NCBI GenBank assembly: GCA_904063045.1 | Contig: CAJFCJ010000024.1 | Location: forward strand, 674,165 to 738,164 | Direction: 5' to 3' | Source of the DNA: Dimorphilus gyrociliatus | Taxonomy: Eukaryota; Animalia; Annelida | DNA: 64,000 nt | Part shown: positions 2-25,085 of the stretch, one piece after another | How positions within the stretch are numbered: position 1 is the stretch's first letter | How the letters are laid out: every line of letters begins with the position of its first letter | Notes under the pieces: model-generated | Database searches by the model: none | What the model was told of the DNA's origin: nothing | The model's input: the letters and a program-made list of their open reading frames with translations, nothing else | Program-made: the position numbers and the translations under genes

Positions 2-394
2 AAACATCTAATTCCCATTAAGTCATCTGAGAATGAAGAAAAACGTTACGTTTTCGCTCAAAATGTCTTGTTAGGTAGCAAAGTTTACTCTGTTGTTGAT
101 GGAAAAGAAATTGAAGATGAAGTTATAGAGATAAGTTCAAAAACATATCAAGGCTATTATTCACCATTAACGTTTCATGGAACAATAGTTATTAATGGCA
201 TTCAGGCTTCCTGTTATGCAGAGGTGGAAAGTCAATCAATATCTCATTGGTCAATGTTTCCATTGAGATCTTTATCCTATATTAAAAATATGCTATCCGT
301 ATCAAAAGTAGAAGATTTTGAAGGTATCCACTGGTATGGAAGACTATCAAAGCAGTACGCATTACCAATAGCCAAGAACTTGGGTATTTTGTAA
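2..394 (+). CDS. Hog (Hint + sterol-recognition region) domain gene, 3' part only; 5' end lies upstream of the window
   Basis: The frame is open from base 2: KHLIPIK...YVFAQNV...GYYSPLTFHGTIVINGIQASCYAEVESQSISHWSMFPLR...EGIHWYGRLSKQYALPIAKNLGIL*. This matches the Hedgehog C-terminal motifs (His of TxxH, APLTxxGTIVVN, ASCYA, H..A.APLR, GIHWY) and is paralogous to the C-terminus of the 1782-3233 ORF. Confidence 0.9.
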   Translation, partial: KHLIPIKSSENEEKRYVFAQNVLLGSKVYSVVDGKEIEDEVIEISSKTYQGYYSPLTFHGTIVINGIQASCYAEVESQSISHWSMFPLRSLSYIKNMLSVSKVEDFEGIHWYGRLSKQYALPIAKNLGIL

Positions 395-1781
395 GGTTGA
401 TTCTTATTGCATTAAAATATTGAATATTCAATAAAATTTAACCTTTCATAAGTTAAATAACTAAACATTTGTCAGTTTTTTTATTATAATCAATTTCTAT
501 TAGAAAAACTAGCTCAACGCCAAAAAGGAATAATGAACTTTTCTTTACTGCTTTATCAGTTTTCGAAATGTATTTTTCCTACTTCCTAAACGATATTTAA
601 GTGGCAGTAGCATTATTAAATTTACATATTCCTAGTTGCAAATACACTGCGAAATGTTAGATTAATTAGGTGGAATAATAGGAGTACGATTGAAAAAATT
701 AGCAATCTTGTAAACTCGCATAATATGATCCTTTTACGTTTTTTTAGTGTAATTAACTGTTTTTGGAATTACTTGATTGTTAAATTTTACAGATAAAAGA
801 TAAGAAGTTAAGTATCTTATTTATTATATTAATACATAAGAAAATGAATCAATTCATTACCTTAAAATGGAAATTTCCCATATGAAAACTTAATTGGAGA
901 TTTTGTAATACTGGACTTACTGTATATTTAACAGATACAAGAATAAATGATTAAAGCAACGATCGAGAATTGAATATACTATATTTAAGATTTAATACGT
1001 AATGCCATAAGAGTCTGTACGATGGATGAGACAGTTTTTAGAAACGTAGCCCTAGAACTTACCATAAATATGTATTCAAATACATCATGTAAGTTTCAAA
1101 ATGGTTTCTCTAGCTATTCGACATAAAATCCTATTCAATTTTATCATTCAAGAAAACTTATAAAAGATATATCTATTCGTTACATTCTGAATATTTTCTC
1201 TTTTAAGTAACAAAAATAACACAGAAGTGAAAATTGAACAGTATAGCAGAGAAACAATACATTATATTTCTTGAGTTGTTTAAATTTAAACGTGATTAAA
1301 AGCTACTGAAACGACTGAAATCATGACTTGCTTGAACATAAATTATGCCTATTCAATTTCATATCCGGCTAAAATAAATCGTCATTTAACTGTGTATCAA
1401 TTCGAATACATTTCATAATCGAATATTTTTAAGCGAAAGCAATATATCGATGAAGATCGAAAAAGCTTCATTTATGAAACATGAATGTTTTATCTACATG
1501 AATTTGATAATAAAAAAAACACAATTGTTTCTTTAAAATGTATCTACAGTTTAGTTTTATTCCGCTAGACTATTTAATTAGCTAATGAAAATTAAACAGA
1601 AAGAATTAAACACAAGTAGCAGATTTAAAACATTAATATATGACTAAGCTAAAAAAAATTCAGTAAATTGCCAATCACTTCTTAAAGAGTGAAAAATTGT
1701 TTATGGCAAAAAAATATATTAAAATATTCAGGTATAAAATTGTCTTTTTACCACGTATTTCATTAAAATGGCTAATAAGTT

Positions 1782-3233
1782 CTAAGTTGATAGCTGAAAA
1801 CCGAGGTTTTGTGCCAATGGTAGAATATAATTTTGTGACATTTCACCATACCAATGAATTCCTTCAGAGGAATCTATGCTAGACTTCAATCCAATTATTG
1901 AGTTATATAATTGCAATACCCATCTAAGTGGAGCCATGGCCAAGTGTGCAATTTCATGACTATTGATTACGGCGTAGCATGATGCTTCAATCCCATTTAC
2001 TATCACTGTTCCATCAGCTGTCATTGGAGCATAAAACCCATTCATTTGTATTTCTTCAATAGATATCACCTCGGTCACTTTTTCAATTCCATTATCTTGA
2101 GAATATAACTTTTGTCCTATTCTTACTTGATCAGCATGAATATAGCGTTTACCATCAGCAGTTTCAACAGCGATCAGATGTTGGTGTGTAAGTTGAATAA
2201 AATGCCCACTTTTTGTACGTAAAGTAAGAAATAGTGCTGGTTCTTGTGTATTTCTATCAAGCATAGTAAGAACTGGACTGAAACGACCTTTAGAAGAGAG
2301 AACAGAATCACCAAGTTTTAATTGCTTCATTGAAATCGTCTGTCCATTTTCAAGTACAACTTTACTTTCACCAGAAAAACATGATTTTCCATAGAGCTTT
2401 TGAATACCTTTTTTGTCATCTGAATTCAGTTTATAATTCTGTCCCTTATAAGAATAGTACGGATACATAATTGCCTGACTCTTACTGGAATGCTTCAAAC
2501 CCAAAGCATGTCCGAGTTCATGACAAGCAACTACCGACAGATGTATCTTATTATTTGACGTACTCCATTTTTCAGCTTCGTCGAAATGGATTTGACCCTT
2601 TCTTGAGGTTTTTGGATAGAAAGCATGGGCTAAAGTTCCAGATGGTCCATCCATGGGATAACCATCTCCATGTGCACCACTAACAAATCTAAATTTCAAA
2701 TGGACATTTCCAGAATAAACTCTTGTAAACTTCAATTTGCTATTGTCAGACCACTGTTTTAGTGCATATTTTATTGCAGCAACCACTGAAACATTTGGTA
2801 TATCAGGTGTATAGTTATACAACCTCCATTTAAGCTTCTTCCTATTCCATTTTTTACCATATAATGCATAACGCTTTTGTCTGCCAGTATTCGGAGCTCT
2901 AAATTCATCGTCAACTATCCCGCATCGTTCTTTATTCATTAGTGACAAAGTTCTTGCATCAAGTTTACCAGTAACGGGTATTGCGGCTTCCTTTTGAAAT
3001 CTTTTCAGACCCTCAGCATAATCATCTGTTTGATTGTGTGTAGTCTTGGACATATGCTCATACTTTTGCAAATATGATCTTGCTTCACGCTCACTTTTAA
3101 CTGCAAGGATACGAGTAGATGAGTCTCGTTTCTCTCTTAATTTAGATTGAACCAAATTATTTTCTTCCAGATTCTCCTTAATTGCAGCAGACATTACAGC
3201 CGTAATAAAGCATAAAAGAATTAATGCCTTCAT
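1782..3233 (-). CDS. Secreted matrix metalloproteinase (M10A-like) fused to a Hedgehog-type Hog autoprocessing domain, 483 aa, intronless CDS
   Basis: Signal peptide MKALILLCFITAVMSA; pro-domain (LKRFQ...PVTGKLD..T..LMNKERCG, Cys104 switch); furin sites REKR (33-36) and RQKR (118-121). Structural-Zn residues lie in AHGDG, LAHAF and QIHFD, followed by HELGHALGLKH (238-248) and the Met-turn AIMYPYY. After GKS|CF (Cys285, codon 2381-2379) come MLDRN, LTHQH, FYAPMTADGTVIVNGIEASCYA and the SRR motifs HLAMAPLR and EGIHWY. Confidence 0.97.
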   Translation of the reverse strand: MKALILLCFITAVMSAAIKENLEENNLVQSKLREKRDSSTRILAVKSEREARSYLQKYEHMSKTTHNQTDDYAEGLKRFQKEAAIPVTGKLDARTLSLMNKERCGIVDDEFRAPNTGRQKRYALYGKKWNRKKLKWRLYNYTPDIPNVSVVAAIKYALKQWSDNSKLKFTRVYSGNVHLKFRFVSGAHGDGYPMDGPSGTLAHAFYPKTSRKGQIHFDEAEKWSTSNNKIHLSVVACHELGHALGLKHSSKSQAIMYPYYSYKGQNYKLNSDDKKGIQKLYGKSCFSGESKVVLENGQTISMKQLKLGDSVLSSKGRFSPVLTMLDRNTQEPALFLTLRTKSGHFIQLTHQHLIAVETADGKRYIHADQVRIGQKLYSQDNGIEKVTEVISIEEIQMNGFYAPMTADGTVIVNGIEASCYAVINSHEIAHLAMAPLRWVLQLYNSIIGLKSSIDSSEGIHWYGEMSQNYILPLAQNLGFQLST

Positions 3234-6024
3234 ATCTTCTTTTTGCCAATTTAAAAATTATATATTTTATAGATGTTCTGTCTTCCTTACTTGAAGGAAC
3301 TCTGTTCCACTATGTACTTTTACTTACTTATATACGGTTCTCATTTTGCCCCAGTAACCAAAAAAGTAAGCTTGTTTACGACATTTATGCTATTTTTAGA
3401 AAATTTAGCGTGTCTTCGTGTCTTGAACAGCTGAAATTGCAATTTTTTTTTTTCAAAGCCTGATGAGTATTTCGCTACAAGTATAAGGCAAAATTTAAAT
3501 AACCCACGCTTGTATCTGATATAACTATATAACAATTCAGGAAGCAGAATTCTGCTTACCTGTCCCAATGCATGTATTTTCAATTATATTATATATTCCA
3601 AAATATCCTCAACATTAAGTTTATTCATTTAAAAATAGCTGATTATTAGTTGAAAAAACTGTTTAGAAAGATTCTACTCTAATTTTTTAATTAGGTCAAC
3701 TAGTTTTTAAACCAAATTTATTAGAACTATGTCAGGCTTGTTTTTCTAATATGTTTGTTATACAATCAAAAGTTTAATAAATAGGTTAAAATTATTAGAC
3801 AAAAATTGATAATATCAACATGAAGATGAATGATTACCTTTATAAAGAATATTGTAAACATTTAATCTTTCTGTTCTGATAGAGAAAAATTCAATAAAGT
3901 AAGCCCTCCCAGTGGAAATTTATCTCAAGTACAACATATATCTAATTGTATGTTTTAAAGACAAATATCTCTTCTTTCTTTTTTTCAAAAGATCTGACGA
4001 TTTTATTTTGAATTTAATATTGTTTGTAAAAGCTTTTGCAATATGGCTTGAATTTTTATAGTAAAAATTGACTTTCTTTTTACCTTGCTGTTTATTCTTT
4101 AGAGACTTTTTTCTTAAATATTAAATTTACACAGATATCACAAATTTGAAATTTTCAGAATAGTTTTTAATTCATTCTCATAATATTAAATTACGTTCCT
4201 TTTCATGGAGAACAGAATCGACAAGTTTCTATTGAAATAGTCTATGTACTGTTTTCTGACCCTTAAGTCACTGCTAATTCGTCGTTAACGAATAGTTAGA
4301 ATTTTTTTAATAGTTCAACAAAATTATCATTTGAATGCAGAAATGAATCATGACTGAAATTGTATTTCATTTTTGTTAATACTTCTCAACTATCGTATCA
4401 AATGGATCACTATATATTTGAGATTTCTTTGTTAATTCTTACTGATCCGATCTTCATCACCATCATAGTATTACAACATTTGAAAATTCTGACCATTCAA
4501 ATTACCTTTTATATTGATAGCTACAAGTTGAATCGATATAGCTGCATTGCCTGGCAAATTCAACTGCAAAATTTAAATTGCAAACATCGGATCACTTCCG
4601 AGAAACATATTTTCATAATATAATCTTGTTTCTTTTACAATAAACTTTTTAAAAGCATTACTATCATTCAAGAAATCGTTGTATTCCACAACATTCGTTT
4701 CGTCGTTTCTGCATGTTTATCAAAGATCTTACTAGGAGAGATTTTTTCATCGTCACACAAAGAAGTATTGTTTACATCTGATAATAGCATCTCCAGCGGA
4801 AGGCTATAGCTGTAAATTCTATAGACTAAAACTAATTTGATATATTGAAAAGAACTGATTGAAATGTGCCAATAGTTTTTCACAAGCATCAAAAAATATT
4901 TTTAGATTAAAAGAAAAAAAGAGAATATTAAAAATATGAAATCGTTAAATCGATCTTTTATTAGGAAAAGAATTATTTACCAATATTAAATCTGTATCTA
5001 AAAGTCTTATTAATTATTAAAGTATTTGCTAAAAACCAGTGGGCGAAATAGTAACGAAACACAGATTATATTATTTATAAATATATTGTAAACAAATTAG
5101 ATTAAGTGGCACTACTGCTTTCAAACTTTTCAAAGAGAGGATAAGACAGAAAGAGAGAGAGAGAGAGTACAAAATTCTGTTGAATTTAGAGCTATTCGAA
5201 ATGAAAATTCAACACAAACTCTTATTCTTTCTTTTATTTGTATTTCTGAATTGTAATTGTATTAATAAAATATATTTTTTATTAATCATCGTTAAACATT
5301 CAACGATTATTTTTTGAGTCATTTTTAGAAGGAATTTACTTAATCATCAACCTTACGCTAACAGGAAAAAGAGGAAATCCCCCTGTTTTACTATCATTAA
5401 ACTATAGAGTTTTAAGTCTTTATTCAAATTTTTACAGCACTTTAAAATGAACGATTTTTTAATGTTTTCCATTAAAAACTAAGAAGCTATCAAACGTGAT
5501 CTTGTTTATTACTAGTTACTATAGAGATAGCATTTTTTGTGTTGATCTCTTTCCTTTTGCGTCAATTGTATAAATATTTAATCTTTCCTTGAGCTATTCA
5601 AAGAGATTTAATAGTTTGTCACTGTTTTTAAGTAAAACTGTAAAAGAGTTAGAGAAAAAGTTCAATATTAAAGAATTGTGTGTTTTAAAGGAATTAAACT
5701 TTTATACTTTTATGAAAAGTTGATAAAAGTCAAGCTGCTTTGCAAATTATTGAAATATAATTATTAATAATTCATATATGAAAATGAGAACAATTAATCT
5801 ATATTATACAATATTTATTGAACAGTTAATTATAATAGACGTCAAATTAATTAGAATTGGAAGTAATATGTATATTTCAAGTTAAACATCTACTTATAAA
5901 GGTAAATTTTTGTAACATTTCTTTATTTAAAAGAGTTTAAAACTCTTTTGGTCTAAAAATTTTTAATAACTAAAATCTTTGTAACTCTTTGATTTCTAAT
6001 ATTAAAGATTTCTTATAATTTAAC

Positions 6025-7318
6025 CTAAATATATGCTAATAAAATGGACAAAATGATGACAATCTTTCCTATTTTCATTTCGGAAGCATCATTGCAGATT
6101 TTCTGTCCTCCATCTGTAAGAAAATGATATTTTGCATTTAGTTTATCAATATCTTTGTCTTTAAATAATTAGACTGAAGATAGGAAACTATACCGCAATA
6201 TCCGCACAATGCTTTACAATTTGACTTCATAAAGTCAATTATTGTCGGATTTTTGCATACCGACTTTGGATAACCAGGACTTTTACCGCACTTTGAATGA
6301 TTATCCTTACAATCCTCTGTTAAATAAAGAAATATTAAGTATTTCTCAATACATGCTTCGGAAAACTTTATATTTACCGGAACAATCACCTCCAGTCCAG
6401 CCAGTAGAACACTTACATTTACAATTCGATGAATTTAGTGTACCACAATTTTTACACTTGAGAGGACAAGCTAGAAAGGCGAGATTAATCAATGGAATCT
6501 TTGTGTGCTTATTAATAATTGATTATGTACTGTAATACTTACTACAATCACCGGAAGCAGAACTGCAAGAATCTGCAAAATGGTTTTAATGGATTTTATT
6601 ATTCTAAATAAACCATAAATAATCAACTCATATTACCGCATAAACCATCTCGACACCATCCAGAGCCTGATGAACAGAGTGAACATGCATCACCTTTCTT
6701 AAAAGGTTTTTGCCCTTTGAAATTTCCCCTAAAGAGAAAATTTAAATAAATTCAACTAAGAATTATCACCAAAAAGAAAACTAACGGTGGAGAATAATTG
6801 CAGACAATATAGTGTACATTATTTTTAACTTTTCCATTATCCTCGGTTAACTTGGAACAGTATTTATAACCGCAACCAAGACGATTAGTGTCTGCCCAAA
6901 CAACTTGGGTGTAATGACCGCAAACTTTACTACACGATAGCTTATTGTAATTGTAATCTTTTTTCTCATTATACCAAGCCTTAACAACTGCCTCCATATC
7001 AGTATATTGTCCCGAACCGCCAGAAATGAACAAATTTTGACCAGCACTGCCATCAACACCTTCAGTCTTGTCGAATCCATGTTCGAAATGACATTTTTCG
7101 GCCCATTTAGAAGCCTGATTAGCCAAAGGTCCATTCCAAGACATAATTTTCATGTCAGCTGCTCCTTCCTGTCTTCTTAATTTATTATGAACATCAAGAA
7201 TCGCTTTTTCAAGTGAACCAGATAAAACTTCACAAAAAACTTTTCCATAAAAGCCTAAAATTAGAAAAGTAAGGAAGTGCAATATGAGAAGACTTAATTT
7301 ATCTTTAAATACAATCAT
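6025..7318 (-). CDS. CAP/SCP-domain protein with EGF-like and ShKT domains and a probable GPI signal (6 exons, about 319 aa)
   Basis: Exons 7318-6786, 6728-6637, 6572-6543, 6470-6378, 6316-6194, 6113-6025 are all GT-AG and phase-consistent. Signal peptide; CAP motifs HNKLR, GQNL, WYNE, GHYTQVVW, VCNYSPPGN; EGF-like CPLKCKNCGTLNSSNCKCKCSTGWTGGDC; ShKT-like CKDNHSKC...CKALCGYC; hydrophobic tail IVIILSILLAYI*. Confidence 0.92.
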
Positions 7319-8164
7319 TCTTTTTTGAAAAGAAAGTTTTCAAAATGTTATATTGGCGTCTATAAGAAAAATGAATGATTGTCACGATTTAATATTTACA
7401 AAGTGTCCTTTAAAAATGTATTGGCAAACAGTCGTTTCTATGGTATAATCAATATAGTTTTCATGGTTGCTACCTGTCTTTCAAAGAATATTTCCAGTTA
7501 CATCCTGACTAATTATACTAACAAACTAATCTTATATCCATTTTATCCATTCTTATTCCTTTTTACATAGCCAATGCAGTAGGAATTTAATTAGCTAGTA
7601 TACCAACTTTTTTAAATGTTATTTTCGTGTAATCCATTAGTTCTTGAATAATACTCATTTATTCAGTTTCTATAATAAGAATTAATGAAAATATTCATTG
7701 AGACGTTGTTAACATTATACAAACTTTTAAGAAAATAATGGAATTTCCTACTGTAAATACACTCGACTTAATCAGTATTGAAATCTCCTTCCGGTCCTTT
7801 TCATACAAAACTTTTCGCTCTTTTTTAAATATGATAAACCTACAAAAAAAAGAAAGGTGAGCAATTATGTAATTTTAACAAACGGTATTATGACAATACC
7901 TACAAGTAAATTGCGAAATAGATATGATGTATGATAGAGATTTAGTAACATTAACGTAAATATAAATGTATTCTCTTTCTAATTAGAAGTACTTGTATAG
8001 CCTTAAAAAAAAAGTTTCTTTTCATTTCGTTAAATTATACAAGATTTAAATATTCAAGTTAATGAAAGTCTTAACTTGGAAACTTTTAGCAATCAGTCAC
8101 CTCAAAAGATGCTTACTAAGCATTATACCATTCCATTATACTATAGTTAAGAAGAAGTTTGAAA

Positions 8165-8839: not shown

Positions 8840-9538
8840 CTCCCTATTTTTACTCCCATTTCTAATACATCTTTTCATTTGGGACAAGATGAATGGACTT
8901 GTGCGAAGGCATCATACCCCACCCCCACCAAGTGCTTTTCGATGGATGCAACTGTGAGGGTAATAGAAGATCGCCATATAAGAATAGGTCAATTAAATAT
9001 AGGTGACCTAACTCAAGGAGTTAATGGGCAGTTTACAATGATTCGGACAATGCGTCACAGTATTTGTTGAAAGAGATTGAAATTTATTAGCTTTCAAAAG
9101 ACGGAGAAAATGTCGTTAACAGTAACGCTGAATCAGCCATATGCCGTTTTTAAAGATAATACTGAAGAGTGTATATGTGCCAAAAAGTATCATTTGGTTC
9201 AAGAATTTCAACAATTAATAGTAGAATAAGGTCAGAGGAAAAGGTCACGTGCATTGGGAAAGTATTGAAGAAGGGCATTTCGCTCCATTAACGATGGACG
9301 GCACCCTAGTGGTTAACGGTATTCAAAGGTCCTATTACGCCGTTTATTAATAATCATAAAAAAGCCAGAATGTTCATCGCACAAGTTTAGATGAATTAAC
9401 TATTTCTAAAGCGCCATCTTTAGCTCCTACAAGAAACTAAATGTAAATCCTGACAATACACTTCGATATGGAAAGTTATCCTACGTTTACTTGAATTCAA
9501 TGGCCACCCGGCTAGGACTCGCAAAGTCCATTTCTTAA
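8840..9538 (+). pseudogene. Hog-domain pseudogene, third paralog
   Basis: Reading across stops and frameshifts gives PTK|CFSMDATVRV...IGQLNIGD, LTVTLNQ (TxxH His lost), GHFAPLTMDGTLVVNGIQRSYYAV, INNHKKARMF and RYGKLSYVYLNSMATRLGLAKSIS*. The last segment matches the tails of the other two Hog genes. Confidence 0.88.
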
Positions 9539-10269: not shown

Positions 10270-13200
10270 ATGGATAACTCGAAATTAATTAAGGAAGTAT
10301 GATAAATTCTTATATATGATTTAATATTTTTAAAGAATACAAAGCATTTTTAATAATAGTTTAAGAAACGAATTGAGGACGTTCTTACACCAGAGTTCAA
10401 TAATGACGAGGCCTTATTCAGATGGATTAAAGGTTCAATTATTTTTAATGAGTTAATTAATACATTTTATTTTGCGTCTTAGCAAGAAATTATAATGTGA
10501 AAAAAGCCGAAGAAATGTTTAGAAAGGTTAGAATTTCAAGTATTTTAAATATTTCTAATAATTATTAATAATTCAAAAACGCTATTGATTTTAAATAAAA
10601 GCCATAGCAAAATGTATATATATTTGCTTCTCAATTATTATAATATTCGTTTTTGTTATATAAGAATTGCATGTATTGTTGTACAAACTTGTAACAAACT
10701 GTGATAAATTTTGATATAGACAAAAGGCCTATTGTTTACGTACACGTGTTTTCTGTTGAGGAAACTCCTAATTGTTAATATTAAGCCTATACTATTTTCC
10801 TCTATTTATTCAATAATCTATTTAAGAGAAATTATTTCAGTGTTATTTGTCAATGGTATGATGTACAAGAAAACTTTACTTATTGCGTGTTTATTTTTCT
10901 CTTGAATCATTTTTCTATAGAGTATGATATGGAGGAATCAAGTAAAACCGAAAGAAATTAAGGATAATTACTCTATACCGCAGGTTATTCTAAAAAAATG
11001 ATTGTAGATTTTTATTATTTAACAAGGCTATTGATGTATTATTCAAGGTTCTGCAAAAGTATATACCTGCTGGATTTGCTGGAGTAGACAAAGAAGGATC
11101 ACCAGTTTTTGTAGAACTTTACGGACAATACGACTTAAGAGGTTTAATATATTCGGCAAAGCGTATAGATTTTGAAAAAAGATGGATTGTAAATAATGAA
11201 GGGATTATGGATAGATTAGCCGAATTATCAGTAAAGGTAGAAATACTGCAGAGATATTTTATTTAAAAGTTTAAACTATTATTATGACCTAATTAAACAT
11301 ATTTTTTTTTAAGTCGGATAAACCGATTGATGGAATAACGGTTATTCTTGATTGTTCTGGAATAGGTTTATCATTTTTATGGATGCCCGGCATTGAATTA
11401 TTATCGCATTTGGGAAAACTTAGTCAAGATAATTATCCAGAAATCGTGAAAAAAACGTTTATAATAAATGGTAAATAATATTTATTCAAATTCATCTCTT
11501 ATATTATAACTGTTCTATTTATGTATAAAATATTCATTATTTAAAAAAAAATACCGGAAAAAGCAAGGTCAGCTAACGCTCAAGTATAAGCCTAGATATC
11601 TGAATCGGAAGTCAGTTATCTAAAATTGAAAGGAGTCTTACGTACTAGATAATTTTGTTTGCTATTGATGATGTTTACTTAAAATACTTGTATAGATATA
11701 TAGTTATGTATTTTTGCAATTATCTTCAAATATATAAAAGTTAATTATTACAATACCCAGGAAAAGATAATTGAAATCTTTGGTAACGCTTACACGTTTT
11801 ATTAGCGTCTAGTATATTAATTTTACTGTTATTTTTAATCATTGTACTTAATCTACCCTTTGAATAAGCTTTAGTTTCAATCTTAATGACTAATGAAAGA
11901 AATATTAATAAAAAAACAAGAGAGAAAGAGAAGAATTCTTTTTTATCAGCAGTATTTTTCTTATGTTTGCATGTTTATATTCGCTTAGATGAAATTTGTT
12001 CTTTTTTTTTTTAGGCTAAATTTACATACAGAGTTCTATTATCTTTTTCTTTCTTTTAATAAACAGCTCCAACATTCTTTACGGTTTTATGGGGAATATT
12101 TAGAAAATTTATTACAGACGAAATGGCTCAGAAAATATCAGTTTTAGGAAGTTTGTTATACATATTTTAATTCTATTAATTATTTCATTACAGTATTAAA
12201 ATATTTATAAAACGTATAGAAAACTATAGAGAACAATTATTACAATATATCGATGTTAACGAATTACCAAAATTTCTTGGTGGTAATTTAACAGACGAAA
12301 ACGGCGATCCAAGATGTAAATTAATGGTAAAAAGATCATTTTATCTTTAAATTTCTTTCTTTTCTTTTTCTAATAGAATATATTTATAAATAGATTCCTC
12401 AAAATGGTAAAGTTGATGAAAAATACTATTTAAAAGAAATGGATATAAGCCATATGCAAAAAGTTACTATTTCTAACGGAGGAGATTTCAATGTTAAACT
12501 TGATATTAAAAAAATTGGCACTATTTTAAGGTTTTTATTACTTATACATTATACATAGTATATAATATATAAAGAATGCTTTATTATGCTTGTATTATTA
12601 AAAAAACTAATCTGTCACGAATACTGTAAATAAGATTTTTGTTTAGCATAACATTTCCGCGAAATAAATGATTAATATTAAGATTTTTTACCAATTTCCA
12701 GCAAATATCTATTTATAGATGATAACTTTTATGATTATCATTCTTTTTTTTTTTTGAATAATCGCAGAAACATTTTCTGTTAGACTATGCTATATAAAAA
12801 AATAGTCATTTAGCCTAAGATAATTTCATGTATGCTATTTCTCCTAGTTTTTTTTTCCAGCAGCCATATTTAATTAGTGCTGAAAAAGCAAGTTTTTAAA
12901 ATCTATCTATCATTTTATTAAAAATTTAGATGGGAATTTAAAACCGAAGATTACGATATTGCATTTGGAATAACACTTCAAGACAATACAAAAATTAAAC
13001 ACATATTACCTCTTAAGAGAGTAAATTCTCATTTCGTTCCTGAAGATGGCGCTATTACTTGTGAAAAAGTTGGAACATGTTAGTAATAATATATTTCAAG
13101 TAGTAAATTTATGAAAAAAAAACTAAATAATCTCTTCAATTGTCCTTTTTAGACGTAATAAAGTTCGATAACTCTCACAGCTGGACAAGGAATAAGATAT

Positions 13201-13304
13201 TATATTATAATGTCGATTATATCGAACCAGAAGAAGAAAAGAAGGAGAATTTAAGTGAAGATATTGACGATCTGAATGATAATTTTATATGTGTAAAACT
13301 ATAG
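10270..13304 (+). CDS. SEC14-like CRAL-TRIO + GOLD lipid-transfer protein (SEC14L2-type), 11 exons
   Basis: Spliced translation gives MDNSKLIKE|FKKRIEDV...LFRWIK|ARNYNVKKAEEMF, GVDKEGSPV, ITVILDCSGIG, DNYPEIVKKTFIINAP, ELPKFLGG...GDPRC, WEFKTEDYDIAFG, VNSHFVPEDG, FDNSHSW. This is the SEC14L2/3/4 layout. Stop at 13302-13304. Confidence 0.93.
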
Positions 13305-14439
13305 ATTTATGCGCTCTTGTATTTTTTCTTTTAAAGTACAAAAAACAAACCAAACTCTTAAGTGATTGTAAAAAGATACTTGAAGAAAAACAAGCTTTTT
13401 TTTGTTATTTCAATGACAAAGTCTTTTTTTTTTAAACATATAAAACAAAACAAAAGATAGACTAAAAATATAATTAAAACATTAAAAAAAAAAAGACTGG
13501 GGCACAGAGAAGAGAAGTTTTAATCTAATTGAAAATATCTTTTACTAATCCAATTGTTGTTAATCTTTTTCTCTTTTAATGTCATTTTTTATATATATAA
13601 TTTGTCTTTTTAAAAAAACAAAATATTAAAATATATTCTCATTAATATCTGCATTTTCAACAGTTGAAAATGTATTTTATATATGTCATACACGTACTGT
13701 ATATATAATATTTGAATATATTATGTTAATTAATTGTCTTATTTAACCTTTAAATAAATCTTTAAGGAGAAATCTTAAAAAATAGAACTCAAAGAATAAA
13801 AACACTCCTTGCGAATAACCTTAACAATTGGGATTGATTAATTTCAAATCGATAGTTCACCATTATTATATTATGATCGGGGCAATCTAGAAAAAAATCG
13901 CTAATCTTCATTATTGAACAACTCAAAACATAAAAACCTGCTAAATAGCAACTCTTATTGGTTATGTAGTCAATTAATCGAAATACACTGTTATTCTTGT
14001 TATGCCCCCGTTCGTGTCTTATAGTTCTTTTTTATACTTTTTTTTTAAAAAAACAAAAAATGAAAGAAAAAATATATATTTATATTATTCAACAAAGATC
14101 AGAGAATAATTTGTATTCATTTTTTAAGCAATAAATTCATATAAAAAACTTAAGAAGTTTATTATATTATTCCCAAAATATGCAGGTTTTATTGTAAATC
14201 ATAAAAAATAAAGGCTAAACTAGGTTTAATTCCTTTTTTTTCTCTTTATGCCTCATTATAATCTTATAACTATACATATACATATAAAAGTTATTGTTAT
14301 CTCTTTATCAGTCTAAGAAGATTAGAGCTTCCTTGAATTACCTCTTATTATTTATAGATAATATTTAATTAATATATTTACTGGTAAGCTATCCTCTTTT
14401 AAAATGAAAAGTATATGACCACCATCTTGTTTTTACTTT

Positions 14440-17114
14440 TTAAATTGTCTTTAATTTACCGACAAATAATGTTTTTAGTTTAATATTTGCCCAGTTACTT
14501 TTTGCATCTTCTCTAAGCATCTTTCTCTTTTTCATATCTTCTATTTTCTCGTCAATTTGCTGTGCAATATTTTCTTTATTGATTTCTATTAGGCTCGATT
14601 TCAAAGCGTGTAAACTGGCTCTAGAATGTACTCTCCTCCATAACTAATAAAATATTTGATAAATAAGACAAAATTAATGAGTTAGTTAATTCATAAATTA
14701 ATTAATCTTTTAATTAGTTCTCACAATGTAGTGTTTGCCTTCCTCTATTGAATGAACTTACCCTTAAACTTTCCAGAGCCTGATATTCAACTAAATTCCT
14801 ATAGTATTCTTGATTTATCTTATCAATGTCTGATTCTATTGTTGTCTCTCCCCTAGGTGGAAAAAAAGGCAATACTCTGTACAAGCGTATCCAGTCTTGT
14901 TGTAACAATTTCGCCACAAACTTCAAATATTTATCAAATTGATCTAGAAGAAGAAAGAAAGGTCAACAAAAGGTTAAAATATGTTACAATTAAATTGTCT
15001 ATATATACATATACTCAATATAGATCAACTATATGAATATTTGTGTATAATGAAGAGTTTTTTATTATTAAAAGGAAAGTTTTTTCAAGAGCCTATAGAA
15101 GTTTCTTTTTTCCCTTTTTAATCAAGATAATTCTACGTTCAGAATAAAACACTTGAACAGATTTTAGAGTCTACTTAAAGTATCGTTTCGAGTATACTCA
15201 AACTATCTTGTGTCTGAAATATCAAGTTGACACTTACTTATTATAAAATTTTAATTAAATTATAGAAAAACTTGTTAAAAAAATTAATCAATTGAAAGAG
15301 AAAAGAGAAAATGTTGAGAACAAAGAAAGATGAAAATAGAGCAATGAAAATTTACAACCTTTAGCTTTCGGCTGTTTCCCGATAGATTCTTCTTTTGTCG
15401 TTATATGAGGAATTATCTTTGGTTGTATATGACTTTGAGCTTTATATATTTTTCTATTAGTTACAGGCATATTATGGAAAATCTTCTTTAGAGAAGCAGC
15501 ATTTGTTTTAAATATATATATATTCTTTAAAGAAGCTAAGCAATTTTGAATTCTATTCAATTCAAAATCATCTCTTTCATATTCGCTTTTAGCTAAATCA
15601 AATGATTTTTTAGCTCTTTTGTATTCATCATTTTTCAATTCAACCAATTTTTTCCTTTCTGTTATATAGTACATTTTCTTTTTATTCCTTTCAAATTTTT
15701 TATCCAATAATGGAATTTGATTAATTAATTGTAATTTTTCACTTGTCAACTTTTCAACTTTTTCAATAGCCGCTTCCTCGTTTTTCACATCGTCTATTCT
15801 TTCTCTCAATAGATCAATATCCATTCGAAGAAATCTATGTTCACTTAACAATTCTTCATACTCTTTTGTTAATTTTATTTCTTTCTCCTTTGTTTTAGAC
15901 ATTTCTTGTTTTTGTTGTTCAAAATCTTTTGTAGCTCTTTTAAATAAGACATCGGAATGAAAATATCTTCTTCTTGATTGTTCAACAATCTTTAACTGAT
16001 CTTGTAATTTTCCTTCTAAATCTGTTATATCTTGTTTTATATAAGTTGCATATTCCCTATCGGCTTCTATCCATAATTTTATACCCTGTTAAATTAAGCA
16101 TAAAAGGTCTGCTTTATTAATCAGATATTTATAGAATATTTACTGTAGAGACTTTACTTAATCGTAAACATTATAGGCCTTACTGATTGATTGAAACATC
16201 CAAATTGTAAACGGGGGGTAAATTATAATTTAAGCCATATTGGTGTTATAATTAAAAAATTGAGTTTATACATCGTTTAACTTATAAATATTTATGACTC
16301 TGATTTGAATAAGTGAGGAGAATAGTAGCAATTTTCTCCAACAACGAGATAATTTACTGAACAATTGAATCATTAATCAATTGATAAATGAACTTTTAAT
16401 ACTAACCTTTAAGGCGTTTCTTAGGTTAGCTAAAGCTTGCGGTATTACAAGGACTATAGATAATTCTCCGCAATCGATTCGTCTGGCATAGTCGTTTGAC
16501 GTTAAACCAAATTGATCCGCTTGAAGACCCAAATGAGACCTATACGACTTAGACATTGACGTAACATTCTCTATATGATCCTTAATAGCGTTATTGAATT
16601 CGGTCTGTTTTTTGTTGTAATGTTGCGCAGTTTCCAAATACGAATCGTAATTTTCGGTGTAAAATGATAGACAATATCTTGATAAGAACGATAAAATGTG
16701 TCCGATATCTTCCAAGACACTTTCGAATTTATCCGGAACAAATTGTAATAATTTATTATGATATTCCCTGAGTACTTTCATTGATAATATATTATTTTGA
16801 AAATCTTCTCCCGGATTTGCTGCTATTTTTGTCGCTATATCGTCAACTTGCCATGCGGCGTTCAAATTGTTTACGTTTGTCTGCTTTTGTAGACGCTTTA
16901 AGTGCTGAACCAAAGTTCGTAAGTAGATATCAACTCTCCGTCCATCGAAAAACTCTAATTCAATATCATCTAAATTGTCCTTTAGAACGTCTATTTTATC
17001 CAGAACGGCCTTGTAAATTGAATTAAGATTTTTCGGTCTTTCCTTGTCAAAGTCTGTTAAGTTTTGACGGTGTCTGTAAAAGGCTAAAGCTGTCGGCGCT
17101 AATAACGAAGACAT
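14440..17114 (-). CDS. Helical/coiled-coil protein with a C-terminal death domain (4 exons, about 606 aa)
   Basis: Exons 17114-16407, 16085-15359, 14943-14762, 14643-14440 are in frame. There is a long heptad region, then VAKLLQQDWIRLYRVL...EYQALESLRLWRRVHSRASLHALKSSLIEINRKDIA, which fits a death-domain pattern. Confidence 0.8.
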
Positions 17115-18357
17115 AGCCTGAAATGAACAACCTTCTAAACATAGGCTTTAATAATGTTCTTATTTTTTTTCTCGCTTATAAATATAAACAATGTAAACGC
17201 CACCTAGTTGTTTAACTAATTTTATTATAATTGCATTATAAAAACTTCCCAATGCTTTATCTATATTTAAAGAGAGTCAGAAAAGAATAAAGGTAGGCAA
17301 TTTTTTTATATACATAAAAAATATTACTTAATTACAATCGATAGAAAGTCAATTTTTTTTACTTTTGTTTAAAATTATTGGATTTAATTTCTTTCAGTAA
17401 AACATATTCTAATTAATCAATAACCTATTAATTTATTATTTTAATACAAGGTTATGTCTAATATTTCATTAATTAATGAATTTCAAATAAAAATAGCTTG
17501 AAATAACAATAGTTTTATGATTTTTAATTAATATTTCAACGATATAAAACAATTAAATATATTCTGATTTTCTTTACTTTTCTTTACACTATCATAAAAC
17601 TATACTATTTCTATATCAGTACATTGATTATTCATAATTAACTAGTATACAAAATGATTAATATTTAATAAATCAACAGTGAATAATAGGAAGAGATCTA
17701 TTAACCGACTTACACTAATGTTTTATAGTATTATGGTAAAATTTCTACTTTTAATATTTATATTAGATAATAGATGGCGTTTCTCTTTTTACCATTTGTC
17801 TTTTCCAAGCTTATCTTTATCCAATTCCTTTCCCATTTTATCTTTCACCTTGTTTTTTTTGTTCATTCACCTTTTTCATCCGTCTTTGATAGTTAGGTTA
17901 TCTACTGTAGAGATAATAAAAAAAGAAGATATCGTTTTGAAAACTATTTTTAAACAACTGTTGAAAACTTTCTGTAATTAATTCCTTTAAAGAGTCACTA
18001 CTTTATCCAGTAAAGTAATCTGATTCAAGTATATTTCCTAATAAATAGGGTTAGAAATAAATTCATTAATAGCAATAATCATATTTCAATAAGATATTTA
18101 TAATATAATTGCATATTACCCCTATTCCTTTTCAACTTAATTTCCAGTTCAATCAAAGTAGAAAATTAAAATCCCTCATTCAATTCATTTCTAATTGAAT
18201 TGAGAAAATGATGTTTTTTTATAAGTAAATATTAATTTTAATAAATTAAAATAATGAATTAACATTTACTTTATAAGGAGAGGAAAATAGATGTTTACTT
18301 TACAGTATACATATCTGTATCTCATAGAAGGGTATCTCTTCTCTTTCTTCTTTGAAT

Positions 18358-21300
18358 ATGTATATTCTACTATTCTTTCTTTCTATCATATTCTGTCCAA
18401 GTAAGTTTATGTAAGAAAATAATGTACTTTGCTATATTATATGTAATTTAAATCACACTTTTTTTACTTTTGCCGATAAGGAGTAGAAGGATTCGCTGAA
18501 AGAGATTTATTATTGAATCGAGGGGAGATACTGAGTTTGTTTATAGAAGATAAGAACATCAGCAAGGAATGCTCAACAGATATGGCGTTGCTTTATAAAA
18601 TGCACTTTGGAAAGGAAAATCATAATTCTACAGTCTCATGGGTTGATTTAAGTAATAAATTTTATTTGTATATTTATTTTTAATCGATAGAATATGAATT
18701 ATATTTTTATTCTTAAAATAAAACTGCAAAATAGTGCTAGATTCTTGGGGAACATTTCCCACTGGATTTTTTAAAGGAGACGTCAAAATGTTGGGTAGTT
18801 ACAGTCAATGTATAACGCTAAAAGTTCCAAAAGATATTACATTTAAAAGCTCATATATTAGATTGGATTTTCAAGTTATAAGCGCAATTTTAAAGGTAAC
18901 ATAGCAAGTCTTACGAAATAAATAGTGTTGAATAACCTAATTTCTTTTTCAATTGTATATTATTTTATTTAAAAAATAGGAATATTTTGATAAAACTACT
19001 ACAATAAACATTGTTCCATCTTTTGGTATGTGTTTGCCAGACACTTGCAGTAAATGGGAAATAAAAGAAATCTTTACAAAAGGTAATTGCTTAGTACATT
19101 GGCTATTGTACCTCTATTTATAAAGAATAATGTTTAATTGAATAGTTTACAGATGGAAAAGTTTCCCTATTAAACCATCGAAAGTTTTTTCTTATAATAC
19201 TATTGAATTGGATACAAAAGCATGGATTTTATTGTAATTATAGAAGATGTCTTAAAATAAGGATAAGTTCAAAAGAGAATCATTTCGATTTTAACTGAAA
19301 AAAATGGAAAACTTTTGAACTTTTCTCTATTTTTATTAGGTTTTATTCAAGTGTGTTTGAAAGTTGAAAAATCTTTAAAATTTTAGGCTAGCTTTAACCT
19401 CTATGATAATAGTTATTGCTGTTGCTACTCTTCTGGATATTTTAGCACTGAATTCTCCTATGAAAGATGACCAATCGAGTGAATCGGAATTCTTACTAGA
19501 GGAGAAAAAGGATAAAAATTCAAACATTTTAAATAAAATTCTAGAAATTTCAACATGCTTTTCGTTTGTAAGAAATTTGGAAAAATTAAGTCTTGCAGAA
19601 CCTTCAAAAGACATATCATGTATTCATGGTATAAGATTCTTTTCAATGTGTTGGATTATCTTAATCCATACAAGATACGATCTAACCGCCTTGTTTGGTA
19701 AATATTTTCAATTTTTAGTTAATTTCATATAGTATCAATTTATAATATCTTATAGCAAATCCTACATATCTAAAGGAATGGAACATTGGATTTCTATCAA
19801 ATATATCTTATAGTGTAGTGGCTGTTCACAGCTTTTTTGTTTTAAGGTAATTAAATACGTAATTTTTAATTAAAAATATGTTGAAAATAAAATCTTGTTT
19901 ATTTTTTTGTTTATTTCAACAAGTGGATTTTTGGTTACCATATCAACATTGAAGAAGCTTTCTGATTCTAGTTTTAAAATTGTTCCATACTATATTCATA
20001 GATATTGGAGGTAATAATTATATTTTTATAAGAATATCTTTTATTTTCTTTATTTCCCCCCTCTCTCCCTCTCTTTCTCTCTCTCATACTTTTTATCTCC
20101 CTCTTTCTATACTTTCTTCCCCTTACGCTTAAAATATTATATGTCTTTATTTATTTATAGAATTACGCCGACTTACGCAATTATAATGGCAACTTATATA
20201 ATATTATATCAATTTTTTGTAAAGGGACCAATGTCTGTTGAGGAAAATTCCTTCTTAGAAATATGTAATAAAGGATGGTGGATGAATCTGTTATACATAA
20301 ATAATATAAATAATATTTCGGTTGTAGTTTGTATAAACAAAACTCATAGTTATATTCCTATTTATTTATTATTACAGTGTATGGGATGGACTTGGTATTT
20401 GGCAGCTGATATGCAATTTTATGTCTTAGCACCTATGTTAATTTACTCTTTATACAGGTGACATTGTATATAAAAACTACATTTCAAGATAAGATTTGGT
20501 AAATAATATTTCTAACAGGTGGAAATATTTTGGTATTATTTTCAATCTATTAACAATTATAGCGGCATGTATAACTTCTGCTATAATATCATATCAATAC
20601 GATTTTCCATCATCCAATTTCTTTATTAAAGAGAAAAAATTGTAAGTTATGTAGAATAAAAATATAAGCCTGTTAACACCTTTAATAAAAAAACATAGAG
20701 ACCTATTTACACGGTTATATTATGAAACACCTTGGACAAATATTGGTTCTTATGTTGTTGGAATTCTAACAGGCTGGAAATTTTTTACGGATGGAAAACT
20801 TCAATTAAATAAGGCATAAGTTTTTTTTTTAAAAAGAAAAACTCTTAATAAATTTTCTTTTTTATTTAGATAACTATCAGAATTATATCTACGGCAGCAG
20901 TTCTTATAAGTTTATTAATCATATTCTTTCCCATAAATACTCTAAATGTTAAGTTTACGAATGCAATTTTTAATTCACTTCATAAACCTCTGTGGAGTAT
21001 TTGTATTAGTTGGCTAATTCTATTTTGTCTCACAATTCAAAAAGGTAAACTTACTATGCGCGTATAAAGATTACTCAATAATCTTTTATTGTTCAATTTT
21101 ATGTCTATTTATTTTTACCAGGCATTGTTCATGACCTCCTCTCTTTAAGAATGTGGATAGTACCAAGTAGATTAACTTTTGTGGCTTATTTAGTTCATCC
21201 TATAATCATTTCTGCTTTTGTTAATTCAAGGGAAAACCTTATTATTATGGACAGTTCCCTTGTGGTAAGTAATTTAAAAAGTAATCCAAAGGATTATTGT

Positions 21301-21484
21301 GTCATATACTTAATCACTTTATTCTCGCACTATTCCCTATCCTTTCGTTTATTTTTTCCCATTTCAGATATTTTTCTTTCTTATGTTCTTAACTGCTTCA
21401 TTCCTACTGGCCTTTTTCATAACTGTTACTGTGGAAATTCCATTACGAAACGTCGCAAAGTATACTCCTCTTCTTAAATTATAA
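18358..21484 (+). CDS. NRF-6 / O-acyltransferase-like protein (NRF domain + Acyl_transf_3 multi-TM)
   Basis: Signal exon 18358-18400 (MYILLFFSSIIFCP); NRF-domain LDSWGTFPTGFFKGDVKMLGSYSQC; CFSFVRN; CIHGIRFFSMCWII; IHRYWRITP; CMGWTWYLAADMQFY; YYETPWTNIGSYVVG; LSRLTFVAYLVHP-like motif; TVEIPL near the end. Confidence 0.92.
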
Positions 21485-23936
21485 AATAGCCTACTTACAT
21501 CTTCGAGAACAACTATTTTCCGTTTTAAAAAACACAAAAGTATCAAAAACGAAAAACAAAAACCAATATTTTATCCAAAATATAAAGCAGATATACGTTT
21601 TTTATAGAATTTACTATAGATATTATTACTTTTCATCTTAGAACAATAACCTTTGAAGCATTACCCCTGGGTCCTTTTTTTATCATTTTTTACTCATAAT
21701 ACATTTCAAAGTCATAAATAATTTAGAGAAAAAATTTTGTTTATCAATTTTTAATTGAGAAAGAATGAAAGAATATTAAAAAAAGGAGGAAAACATCTTT
21801 CAGTTATTACTTCTATTCCTTAAAAAGAAGGTAACCTCTTTCTATCCTTGTAATTTTTTAAGGAAAATTAAAGAAAACGTTTTTAACAACTTTCAATTAA
21901 TTCCTTTTTATTTACAATATCTCTTTTGACAAGTGTAGAGAGAGAGAGAAAGAAAAACATTGAGATATAGAAAGAGAAATAGAGAATCAATAATTGTTTT
22001 TAATAGTATAATAATAAAAAAAGCACTCATTAAAACAAGGCTAAATTACCAGTGTATTTTTTATTTCAATGTTTTTGAATAAATAGACATATACGTATTT
22101 TTTATTTTAATCTACTTAATATATATCTTTTCTCTTTTTTTTGTTCTACATCGCTAATAAATACTTATAATGTCTATAAATATATATGTATACATTGTAA
22201 ATTCACTTATTCTAAGCCAAAAAAAGCAATATAAACGACGATTTTTGTACACTTTCTAGAAATCTATACGATGAAAAACACCTACATAAAAAAGTCAGTT
22301 ACAATAATTACTCAGACACTAAAAAGCAATAAGATATCTTCTTTGGTGTCTTTTCTTTTTTACCAATATTTATCTTTATTTCAATATAAGAATAAAAGAA
22401 CACCTGGAAAATGCACTCTTGCTTTTAGTCGTTTTTTATTGTTACTAATATTTGCTATTATACGTATCTACCAGTTTCCTTTTTTTATATACATTTATTT
22501 AAATAAATTCGTATATTATTAAAATAACTAATCAATAATGAAAATTCTATTTAACAAAATACTACTTTGTTTTTTCTTATTTTTATTATTATTAAGCCAT
22601 TTTTATCGAGGATAATGTGACAAGTTCTCTCATTTTATACAACTCTGAACTAGAAAATAGATATCTCAATGGGCATTGTTCATGCTTTATTATCTTCTAT
22701 TTATTACATTGACTATTCATGGTCGATTATAGTTTTGAGCCTATGCTAATAACTAATGTATAGCACAAGTATATTTTAAGTTTTTTTCTGAGTACTGGAT
22801 GAATTGATCAAGTGACAGGGGTATTCATTCTACTAATGTCAACAGTTTATAATAATTTGGGTAAATTAACCATATTTTTGGTTAATTAAAAGATTATTAT
22901 TAAATGTTTTATGTAAACATTGTAAAGGATAGAAAATATGGTATATTAGAAAGGTTTATATACTAACATTACATTTCTATAAACCATCCAATGGATCGTG
23001 TACAAATTAATTGCTTCCATACATAAGATATATAGAAAAATAACACTATGATATGCGAATGGGGAGGAAACGTTGATAAATTCTGTCAAATGCCAATACA
23101 ATCAGAATTTCATTTGTCAACTCAATCGAACGTTCTGGGTCGGCTCTTTTCATTTTTAAACACAATTGTTTTTTCTGTAGAGAAAAGCATACATTGATGA
23201 AAGAGATTTGAAAGAGAATACATTAATTCCTAGTAGGAGAAGTGGTGAGAAATGAAAATTGAAGATATAATTATTGTAATTTCGTAGAAATAGCTTACAA
23301 ACTATCCGAAATAGAATAAATTCCTATTTATTCATAAAATGAGAATGGCATTAACCAGGTTTTTACTGTTTGTATGCTTCGCAAGCTTGCTACGTCTATT
23401 TCTTAATGCCATTTATGAAATCCCTTGCCACATAAACATGACTTTATCAATATTTCTTTAAGAATTAAAAGTAAATATTTGTTTCTATTGTTTGCAAAAT
23501 AAAACGTTTTAATCTTAATCCCTTAAGTTCCCATCTGCTATACATACTAGTTTTCTAATGTTACAAAAAATATATAGAACCAATTAGCTGGTTCCAAGTA
23601 TCATTTTTTCACCAGATGGTAACCATAACCTTACAGCTTCCTATTAATATTCATAAGAATGTAAGAAAATGTAGACTAATTATCATTTTAACTACGGAAA
23701 TTGAAACCAGAAGAACAAAATGAAGAATGTAAGGTATTTGAGGGAGGATACCTCTATAAATAGTGTTCAGTTTTTTTTTTCTTTTTAACAAGTCAATTTA
23801 CATTTATAATTCTGAATTTTTATTCTAAATTATGAACTAAGCTTTATTTGAATGGGAATTCCTATTAGAATATTCAATAAGATTGTCATCAATTTTGTCT
23901 GTCTTAAATTATACATAGCTGCATGTATATATATAT

Positions 23937-23973
<37 letters not shown>

Positions 23974-25046
23974 CTACAGATTTGTAACAATTTATTTAAC
24001 GCCAATTGATTATAGTATGCGTGACCTTTCTAAAAGAAAAAAGTTTACATTGGAAAAAATCGCTACGTCAACACCTGCGTTTCTTTTTTTTCTCAGGTGA
24101 ATAGTAGGCGAATTTTGCTATTTTTCCATTTCTAATATTTCACTAATCGAGTAAATAAATCAAATATTATTATTTACATATGAAAATAAAGGGTTATAAA
24201 ATTGACTATAGTAGATAGAAATGCTTTGCATATAGAATATATTGCAGAGGATGCAAATATACTATATACTGTACAATTACTTGCCCTATTCCAATATGAA
24301 TTCCCATACCCGTTAGATCAAGATAGGAATTACATGGGAAACAAATTTTTGCCTAAGGTCGATGATGTACAAATGGCTCTACTTTTCTCAGCTTGAGGTT
24401 GGGACATATGTAGGAGTTGGTCGGTTAGATCAAGGTTTAGATCTTTACCAATTGTCGCTTTTATGAAACTTAAGCTACGTTGAATGAATAATCTAATCTA
24501 TACGACCTTCAACCCCCGCACTCAAACCTACACATGGTCGGTCAGCTATTGCTCTTTTAATTAAAAAGAACCAAGCGAACGTATTGCGTAGAAGTAGCAT
24601 TTTCCGGTGAAATCACTTCGCAAAATAGAGGAATAATATTAGCTAAAAACTTGCATTTCAATAGTAAAAACCTAATTAAGTTTAGAATTACAAAATGTTC
24701 AAGTTATGAATGAAAACATTTGAAGAATGAGAAAACCGATTATTCATGTTCTTCAATAAACATATACTTGTCATTTTAAGGTTATACAGCTAATTTCTCT
24801 TTACGAGATTAGCTGCAATTTAATAATTATGATTAGGGTTATTCCTTTTGCTTGGTAAATGCTTAATTTTCATTAATATAAAGGATAATTTGTTACAACA
24901 TTATTAAAAATGAGTCATTTTTCCTTTAAAGAATAGATGGGAAAAGAGGAGAGATTGTATTCACAAAAATAAGAACCCTTGTCCATTACCTTATCATTTA
25001 GATTGGAGTAAGGTTTTCCTCACTCTGTTTCTCCTCCCTTCCTCAA

Positions 25047-25050
<4 letters not shown>

Positions 25051-25085
<35 letters not shown>
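25051..25085. repeat. (TC)n microsatellite
   Basis: Uninterrupted TC dinucleotide run. Confidence 0.95.

Follow-up and report, generated by a model that had tools for sequence, protein, structure and literature searches.

The window analysed here is a stretch of 64,000 nucleotides from the annelid Dimorphilus gyrociliatus (assembly GCA_904063045.1, contig CAJFCJ010000024.1, positions 674,165 to 738,164 of the forward strand), a miniature species with a genome of 73.8 Mb (PMC7854359). One open reading frame (ORF) on its minus strand encodes a matrix metalloproteinase (MMP) in which a Hog domain, the autoprocessing domain of Hedgehog proteins, stands in the place of the usual hinge and hemopexin domain. 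The architecture, the residues of both halves, the transcript and the conservation in a small gene family were observed directly. On balance, the product of this expressed gene is a prepro-MMP that would probably cleave itself, become anchored by a sterol and be activated by furin.

Gene and transcript

The gene and its transcript were defined by the following features (UTR, untranslated region).

1782..3233 (-): coding sequence of the MMP-Hog precursor, single exon, 483 amino acids, stop codon at 1782-1784 (ORF list)
1704..3286 (-): extent of the mRNA, without intron; about 53 nt of 5' UTR, the coding sequence and about 78 nt of 3' UTR (run X1)
3326..3333 (-): TATA-like box with the sequence TATATAAG; it precedes the start of the X1 contig by about 40-47 nt (sequence inspection)

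The ORF starts with ATG, has no internal stop codon and no intron, and lies on a 1.1-Mb animal contig. Its translation is identical to the annotated product P0001. The original prediction, made from the nucleotide sequence, had placed an MMP-Hog protein in a single ORF at 1782-3233, and this was borne out by Pfam and the ORF list. A transcript crossing the junction of the two halves near position 2381 had been set beforehand as a test, and such a transcript was found. Record 2 of run X1 (1583 nt), from an RNA-seq library of a coral-tank metatranscriptome that is independent of the genome assembly, aligned without gaps to 1704-3286, with 11 substitutions. The depth of run X1 was 0 in the flanks at 401-1600 and 3401-6000. 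Since the contig crosses the junction without a gap, the fusion is one mRNA and not an assembly chimera, and this mRNA is colinear with the genome and free of introns. It is virtually certain that the gene is real.

Because of the 11 substitutions relative to the genome, the X1 contig was assigned to another strain. Five of these substitutions are synonymous and six nonsynonymous; all lie within codons 38-217, outside the Hog domain. A nearly identical transcript (11 differences in 1583 nt) in a coral metatranscriptome points to D. gyrociliatus, or a close strain, living in the sample or tank.

In run X2 the depth on the gene was in the thousands (12,000-28,000) and about 0 in the flanks; it was not taken as a measure of expression, because this run had been selected by the MMP-Hog gene. 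A 518-nt contig of the same run (3142-3659 (-), depth about 2,200) reaches 426 nt upstream of the ATG and extends past both the X1 start at 3286 and the TATA-like box, thereby covering 3287-3659 (-). It may represent an isoform with a longer 5' UTR or a separate upstream transcript. The TATA-like box itself is a putative promoter element.

The metalloproteinase half

Three features make up the N-terminal half of the precursor.

3183..3233 (-): signal peptide, residues 1-17, consisting of MK, a hydrophobic core and S-A-A (sequence inspection by eye)
2871..3182 (-): MMP pro-domain, residues 18-121 (Pfam, alignment to proMMP-7, AlphaFold2 model)
2382..2870 (-): MMP catalytic domain, residues 122-284, 18.7 kDa, pI 9.9 (Pfam, PDB search, Foldseek)

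In the pro-domain, the Pfam family PG_binding_1, the module usual for MMP pro-domains, matched residues 50-99 (2937-3086) with an E-value of 3.4e-05. The cysteine switch, KERC104GIVDD (C104 at 2922-2924), aligned with PRCGVPD of proMMP-7; the cysteine is kept and both prolines are substituted. A furin-type site, RQKR (residues 118-121, 2871-2882), separates the pro-domain from the catalytic domain. This site, absent from the original prediction, completes the proposed maturation path, and in the alignment to proMMP-7 the bond R121|Y122 falls at the canonical mature N-terminus of MMP-7.

Peptidase_M10 (PF00413) matched residues 128-282 over the full model (1-159) with an E-value of 9e-55. The zinc motif HELGHALGLKH (residues 238-248, 2490-2522) is of the form H238-E239-x-x-H242-x-x-G-x-x-H248, the Met-turn AIMYP (residues 254-258) contains M256, and the structural-zinc ligands H188, D190, H203 and H216 are all present. 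These motifs, as well as MLDRN, LTHQH, HLAMAPLR and HWY of the Hog domain, were all found at the residues at which the original prediction had put them. No hemopexin domain was found by Pfam in the protein. The best relative of solved structure was pro-matrilysin, MMP-7 (3.9e-51), followed by proMMP-10, proMMP-3 and proMMP-1. The profile and PDB matches place the protein in the matrixin family (MEROPS M10A), and its MMP half is apparently an active protease.

An AlphaFold2 model calculated from an alignment of 56 rows had a mean predicted local distance difference test (pLDDT) score of 87.4 and a predicted template modelling (pTM) score of 0.73. Values of pLDDT below 50 occurred only in the segment 111-121, the furin linker, which is the one disordered part of the model. 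With Foldseek, the N-terminal half of the model matched proMMP structures with template modelling (TM) scores by target of 0.89-0.90, and the catalytic domain matched MMP-1, -8 and -13 with scores by target of 0.93-0.97 and root-mean-square deviations of 1.0-1.5 Å.

The junction and the Hog domain

The C-terminal half begins directly behind the catalytic domain (Hh, Hedgehog of Drosophila).

2379..2384 (-): predicted scissile junction S284|C285 (alignment to Hh G257|C258)
1959..2381 (-): Hint module of the Hog domain, residues 285-425 (Pfam, PDB alignments, model)
1785..1958 (-): sterol-recognition region (SRR), residues 426-483 (Hh alignment, AlphaFold2 model)

The junction has the motif GKS|CF, with the codon of C285 at 2379-2381. 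Hint (PF01079) matched residues 283-466 with an E-value of 2.6e-47, in agreement with the earlier statement that hinge and hemopexin domain are replaced by a Hog domain from this motif onwards. In a phmmer search of PDB, residues 284-472 aligned with residues 257-465 of Hh, which has a length of 471 residues (6td6_B, 5.6e-26), and the Hint crystal structure 1AT0 was matched at 3.5e-17. These E-values to Hh structures are far beyond chance. The alignments gave the following correspondences.

S284/C285: Hh G257/C258 (phmmer alignment)
D326: Hh D303 (phmmer alignment)
T349/H352: Hh T326/H329 (phmmer alignment)
C419 in SCYAVINS: Hh C400 (alignment)
GIHWY, residues 458-462: HWY motif of Hh (alignment)

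The residues in question are encoded at 2256-2258 (D326, in MLDRN), 2187-2189 (T349), 2178-2180 (H352, in LTHQH) and 1977-1979 (C419). The PDB alignment thus contained the equivalents C285, T349, H352 and D326 of the Hedgehog autoprocessing residues that had been claimed at the outset. C285, D326, T349/H352, C419 and HWY also matched in an alignment of 15 Hedgehog-type Hog domains from Hh and Hint-only proteins. In Hedgehog, the N-S acyl shift is driven by C258 and the TXXH motif, cholesterol is activated by D303 as the general base, and contacts with the sterol are made by C400 and HWY; the SRR has been proposed to form a helix-loop-helix (PMC9163320).

In the AlphaFold2 model most of the Hint module had pLDDT values above 90. 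The last helix of the MMP spans residues 271-281, and the linker before C285 consists of K283 and S284 only. The SRR was modelled as a helix at 426-447, which includes HLAMAPLR (430-437), a loop, and a second helix at 460-476 that starts at the HWY motif. The SRR motifs are common to the Hedgehog-type Hog domains of the 15-domain alignment. Because HWY and the other motifs align and the last 58 residues are predicted to form a helix-loop-helix, the C-terminal region is a Hedgehog-like SRR and more than a bare Hint fold. This agrees with the type of SRR that had been proposed, and the alignment with Hh extends to its residue 465. The Hedge domain (PF01085) had no match in the protein by Pfam, and the protein was therefore classed as Hedgehog-related (Hog) and not as a Hedgehog proper.

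Distribution of the architecture

An exhaustive HMMER/phmmer search was made of 1.84 billion protein cluster representatives, and the high scorers were checked by Pfam. Peptidase_M10 and Hint occurred together in only four clusters, those of P0001, P0124, P0123 and P0006; P0002, which is 58% identical to P0123, and likewise P0293 with respect to P0006, were not listed on their own. The long high scorers P0121, P0122, P0125-P0129, P0133 and P0138, and P0198, P0234, P0248 and P0254, whose matches continued past residue 300, were rejected as further fusions, having no Hint domain by Pfam. The rejected proteins consist of MMPs in tandem or of an MMP followed by a hemopexin, lectin or other tail. 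Among 2.3 million fold clusters of AlphaFold DB, a match over both domains was obtained only with the paralogue A0A7I8WA82. A word search with the Hog region alone gave 20 matches and missed the paralogues; it has little bearing on the distribution.

No description of the combination of MMP and Hint was found in the literature searched, which included the genome paper of D. gyrociliatus, and neither Lophohog nor any protease is mentioned in Burglin (BMC Genomics 2008). The MMP-Hog proteins are labelled 'unnamed' or 'uncharacterized' in public databases. The architecture is very rare and apparently undescribed, and the impression given in the original prediction that the fusion was unfamiliar has held: none of the four clusters is described in that literature.

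The gene family

The original prediction had spoken of a single gene; this was too narrow. Four intact MMP-Hog genes are present in D. gyrociliatus, of which three form a cluster at this locus, and orthologues exist elsewhere. Two further members of the cluster lie within the window.

2..394 (+): last 130 residues and stop codon of the paralogue P0124, an intron-less MMP-Hog of 457 amino acids (tblastn)
8870..9350 (+): decayed remnant of a Hog domain, a fourth local copy (tblastn with all paralogues, three-frame translation)

Positions 2-391 are identical (100%) to residues 328-457 of P0124 by tblastn, and the rest of this gene (L001 12840-14213) is past the window edge. P0124 carries both the MMP and the Hint domain by Pfam. 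Beside it, just past the left window edge, lies the gene of P0002 (L001 14657-16051), again intron-less and encoding an MMP-Hog of 464 amino acids. The fourth intact gene, DgyrCDS1940, encodes P0293 (470 amino acids) and is located on a different contig. The remnant at 8870-9350 has several stops, a frame shift and a replaced SCYA cysteine, and no gene has been called there. Its start, CF...IGD, and its core, YAPLT...NGI...YAV, are in two different frames, and no MMP part was recognisable upstream. Such a remnant points to birth-and-death turnover within the cluster.

The remaining two members came from Logan assemblies (SRR23372229 with sister runs, and SRR31984831). P0123 (451 amino acids, L003 683-2038) occurred in several of these assemblies and is the counterpart of P0002 at the identity given above. 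P0006 (SRR23372229, L002 823-2668 (+)) shares 67% identity with P0293 over the Hog region; its pro-domain is a separate upstream exon, and the intron splits the pro-domain from the catalytic domain. P0123 and P0006 are orthologues from other AT-rich species.

Conservation and phylogeny

The family alignment comprised the six MMP-Hog proteins P0001, P0124, P0002, P0293, P0123 and P0006. Their Hog domains are 28-63% identical, and 28 of 199 Hog columns are invariant. C285, T349, H352 and C419 are present in all six, and the catalytic residues of the MMP half, too, are conserved across paralogues and orthologues. The general base at the position of D326 is Asp in four of the six and His in P0293 and P0006, the two proteins that have also lost the HWY motif. 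In nature this His mirrors the engineered D303H variant of Hedgehog, and the D303H swap in the C-terminal domain of Drosophila Hedgehog (HhC) retains cholesterolysis activity (PMC9163320). The residue before the scissile cysteine (position -1) is Ser in P0001, P0293 and P0006, Gly in P0124 (G-C-F), Thr in P0002 and Lys in P0123. Ahead of the scissile S|C, the P0293/P0006 lineage has a long linker rich in Gly and Lys with two extra cysteines.

The structural-zinc loop is kept in P0001, P0293 and P0006. In P0124, P0002 and P0123 the structural-zinc/S-loop segment (HGDGYP...) is deleted and the LAHAF histidine is replaced, and in these three proteins the catalytic HExxH and all of the Hog machinery are retained. 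They may be MMPs whose stability is altered, or pseudo-proteases that still undergo processing. The furin site is present in all members except P0124. On both halves P0001 is the most canonical member of the family.

For the Hog domains of P0002 and P0123 the proportions of nonsynonymous (pN) and synonymous (pS) differences were 0.22 and 0.64. Because pN is well below the saturated pS, the Hog domain appears to be under purifying selection in this pair, and the ratio dN/dS can be read only roughly owing to the saturation of synonymous sites. Unlike the intact MMP-Hog genes, the unconstrained local copy at 8870-9350 has decayed.

In maximum-likelihood trees, which were unrooted and thinly sampled, the six Hog domains formed one group against 15 Hedgehog-type Hog domains (support 96/92), and the six catalytic domains formed one group against 36 MMPs (94/91). 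Long branches led to the catalytic domains of P0124, P0002 and P0123. Orthologue pairs were identical in both trees. Since each half forms one group with the same pairs, the data fit one ancestral fusion followed by duplications before the species split.

Proposed maturation and alternative explanations

We infer cleavage, the identity of the adduct, activation by furin and protease activity by analogy, because the mechanism of Hedgehog is established and HhC processes arbitrary N-terminal cargo. The 53-kDa precursor would enter the endoplasmic reticulum (ER) by means of its signal peptide. There C285, aided by T349 and H352, would attack the carbonyl of S284, and an N-to-S acyl shift would yield a thioester. 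D326 would activate the 3-hydroxyl group of a sterol bound at the interface of Hint module and SRR, and resolution of the thioester by this sterol would free the 22-kDa Hog fragment and leave the proMMP esterified to the sterol at S284. A furin-type convertase would then cut after RQKR121 and remove the pro-domain with its Cys104 switch. This would yield an active and strongly basic protease of the matrilysin type (18.7 kDa, Y122-S284), held against the outer membrane leaflet by a sterol three residues past its last helix. Both steps are well supported in silico: self-cleavage at S284|C285 is very likely, and the transfer of a sterol to S284 is favoured with less assurance. The chances are about even that dinophilid annelids possess a second natural class of self-esterifying proteins, joined to a sterol by the chemistry of Hedgehog, in this case with an active enzyme and not a signal as cargo.

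Several points weigh against this maturation. No other member of the MMP-Hog family has so short a linker as the two residues between the MMP and C285, and this shortness might interfere with folding or with the acyl shift. The cysteine is preceded by Ser (S284-C285-F286) and not by the near-universal Gly of Hedgehog, a departure which had been pointed out in the original prediction and was confirmed, and no published data on the tolerance of HhC at this position were found in the literature searched. The loss of HWY in P0293 and P0006 indicates that sterol transfer would not be a fixed property of the family. To our knowledge, no adduct has been proven for Hog proteins other than Hedgehog, for example those of nematodes.

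The chief rival is that the Hog domain only cleaves itself, with water or a small nucleophile resolving the thioester and a soluble, lipid-free matrilysin-like MMP being released; the Hog domain would then be a removable module for folding, ER retention or timing. The variable and mostly non-Gly residue at -1 and the two members without HWY and with His at the place of the general-base Asp speak for it, as do the adducts of non-Hedgehog Hog proteins, which have reportedly not been established. Mutants of Hh at D303, moreover, still cleave with dithiothreitol and have lost cholesterol transfer (PMC9163320). In P0001, however, D326, HWY and the two predicted SRR helices are still Hedgehog-like, and an SRR retained under purifying selection in four of the six proteins would be needless for a module that only hydrolyses. 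Release without a lipid is therefore considered unlikely, though it is to be taken seriously. Much less probable still is a catalytically silent Hog domain that stays attached and replaces the hemopexin domain in binding substrate or, through sterol, the membrane. MMPs usually bear a C-terminal exosite domain, and the two-residue linker might block the acyl shift; but the invariance of the nucleophilic Cys, TXXH and the SCYA Cys at only 28-63% identity of the Hog domains is hard to account for without catalysis. The chance that the gene is an artefact of assembly (a chimera), of read-through between two genes or of ORF calling is negligible. This was ruled out by the continuous genomic ORF, by the colinear RNA contig, which comes from a different sample and strain and contains the UTRs and the whole coding sequence, and by the same architecture in three more intact genes of the genome and in orthologues of other assemblies. 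Self-cleavage with sterol transfer thus remained the preferred explanation for P0001.

Neighbouring genes

A spliced contig of low depth from run X2, lying within 1088-1491 (+), skips 119 nt (1088 to 1208, GT..AG). It is located in the spacer between two convergent MMP-Hog genes, where no gene is annotated. The gene at 6025-7541 (-) encodes a secreted CAP-domain protein of 296 amino acids (CRISP/venom-allergen-like), and that at 10270-13233 (+) a CRAL_TRIO/GOLD lipid-binding protein.

Significance

Autocatalytic esterification with cholesterol is regarded as peculiar to Hedgehog ligands. If a Hedgehog-type Hog domain carries a protease as its natural cargo, animals would have re-used the module to anchor an enzyme by a lipid, and a sterol anchor, if true, would add a new mode of tethering MMPs to the cell surface. 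A sterol-modified MMP might also use the release machinery of Hedgehog (Dispatched-type). The family contains natural experiments on the mechanism, namely the swap of the base from Asp to His, the variable residue at -1 (G, S, T or K) and the loss of HWY from the SRR, and these variants are informative for the substrate tolerance of cholesterolysis. Short and free of introns, the gene is easy to express, so the claim is directly testable. Engineered HhC fusions would, moreover, gain a precedent in nature.

Comparison with known systems

By BLASTP, the Hog domain shares 28-38% identity with the Hedgehog-type Hog domains that were retrieved. It has in common with Hedgehog proteins, such as Drosophila Hh and human SHH, the nucleophilic Cys, the general-base Asp, TXXH, SCYA, HWY and a helix-loop-helix SRR, as well as the predicted N-S acyl shift followed by transesterification to a sterol. 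Both are secreted, and the cargo of about 19 kDa is similar in size to the N-terminal signalling part of Hedgehog. Unlike that of Hedgehog, the cargo is a matrixin zinc endopeptidase, the residue at -1 is Ser, and the mature MMP has no N-terminal Cys for palmitoylation.

The principle of a Hog domain joined to a secreted cargo other than Hedge is shared with Warthog, Groundhog, Quahog, Lophohog, the cnidarian Hint-only proteins and Hoglet of choanoflagellates, and like the nematode Hog families MMP-Hog is restricted to a lineage and locally duplicated. The cargo domains of the other Hog families have been described as novel or unique, without enzymatic assignment. The N-terminal domain of Lophohog, a spiralian protein compared here through published descriptions, is called unique in later papers, which do not mention a protease. 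Unlike the Wart, Ground, Qua and Lophohog cargo, that of MMP-Hog is a recognisable and apparently active protease. The SRR of MMP-Hog is clearly Hedgehog-like, unlike the equivalent region of the nematode Hog proteins, which is said to be divergent and whose adduct has reportedly not been established.

MMP-7 has the same layout of pro-domain, cysteine switch and a catalytic domain ending in ...QKLYGK, without hemopexin. It ends a few residues past LYGK, is soluble and is activated extracellularly, whereas MMP-Hog continues into the Hog domain and has a furin site. Among the membrane-type MMPs, MMP-14, -15, -16 and -24 are type I transmembrane proteins, MMP-17 and -25 carry a glycosylphosphatidylinositol (GPI) anchor, and MMP-23 has a type II anchor. 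MMP-Hog has in common with them a furin-type RxKR site and a device for tethering to the cell surface, in its case a predicted one. Unlike theirs, its anchor would be an autocatalytically formed C-terminal sterol ester, which would require no transmembrane helix, GPI signal or hemopexin domain. The original prediction had counted a sterol as the third way of tethering an MMP; with the type II signal anchor of MMP-23, which is textbook knowledge, it would be the fourth.

The closest parallel in design comes from the laboratory. In engineered HhC fusions arbitrary N-terminal proteins are cleaved and sterylated (PMC4695875; PMC13738340). These are laboratory constructs, whereas MMP-Hog is a natural, conserved and duplicated family that resembles this design.

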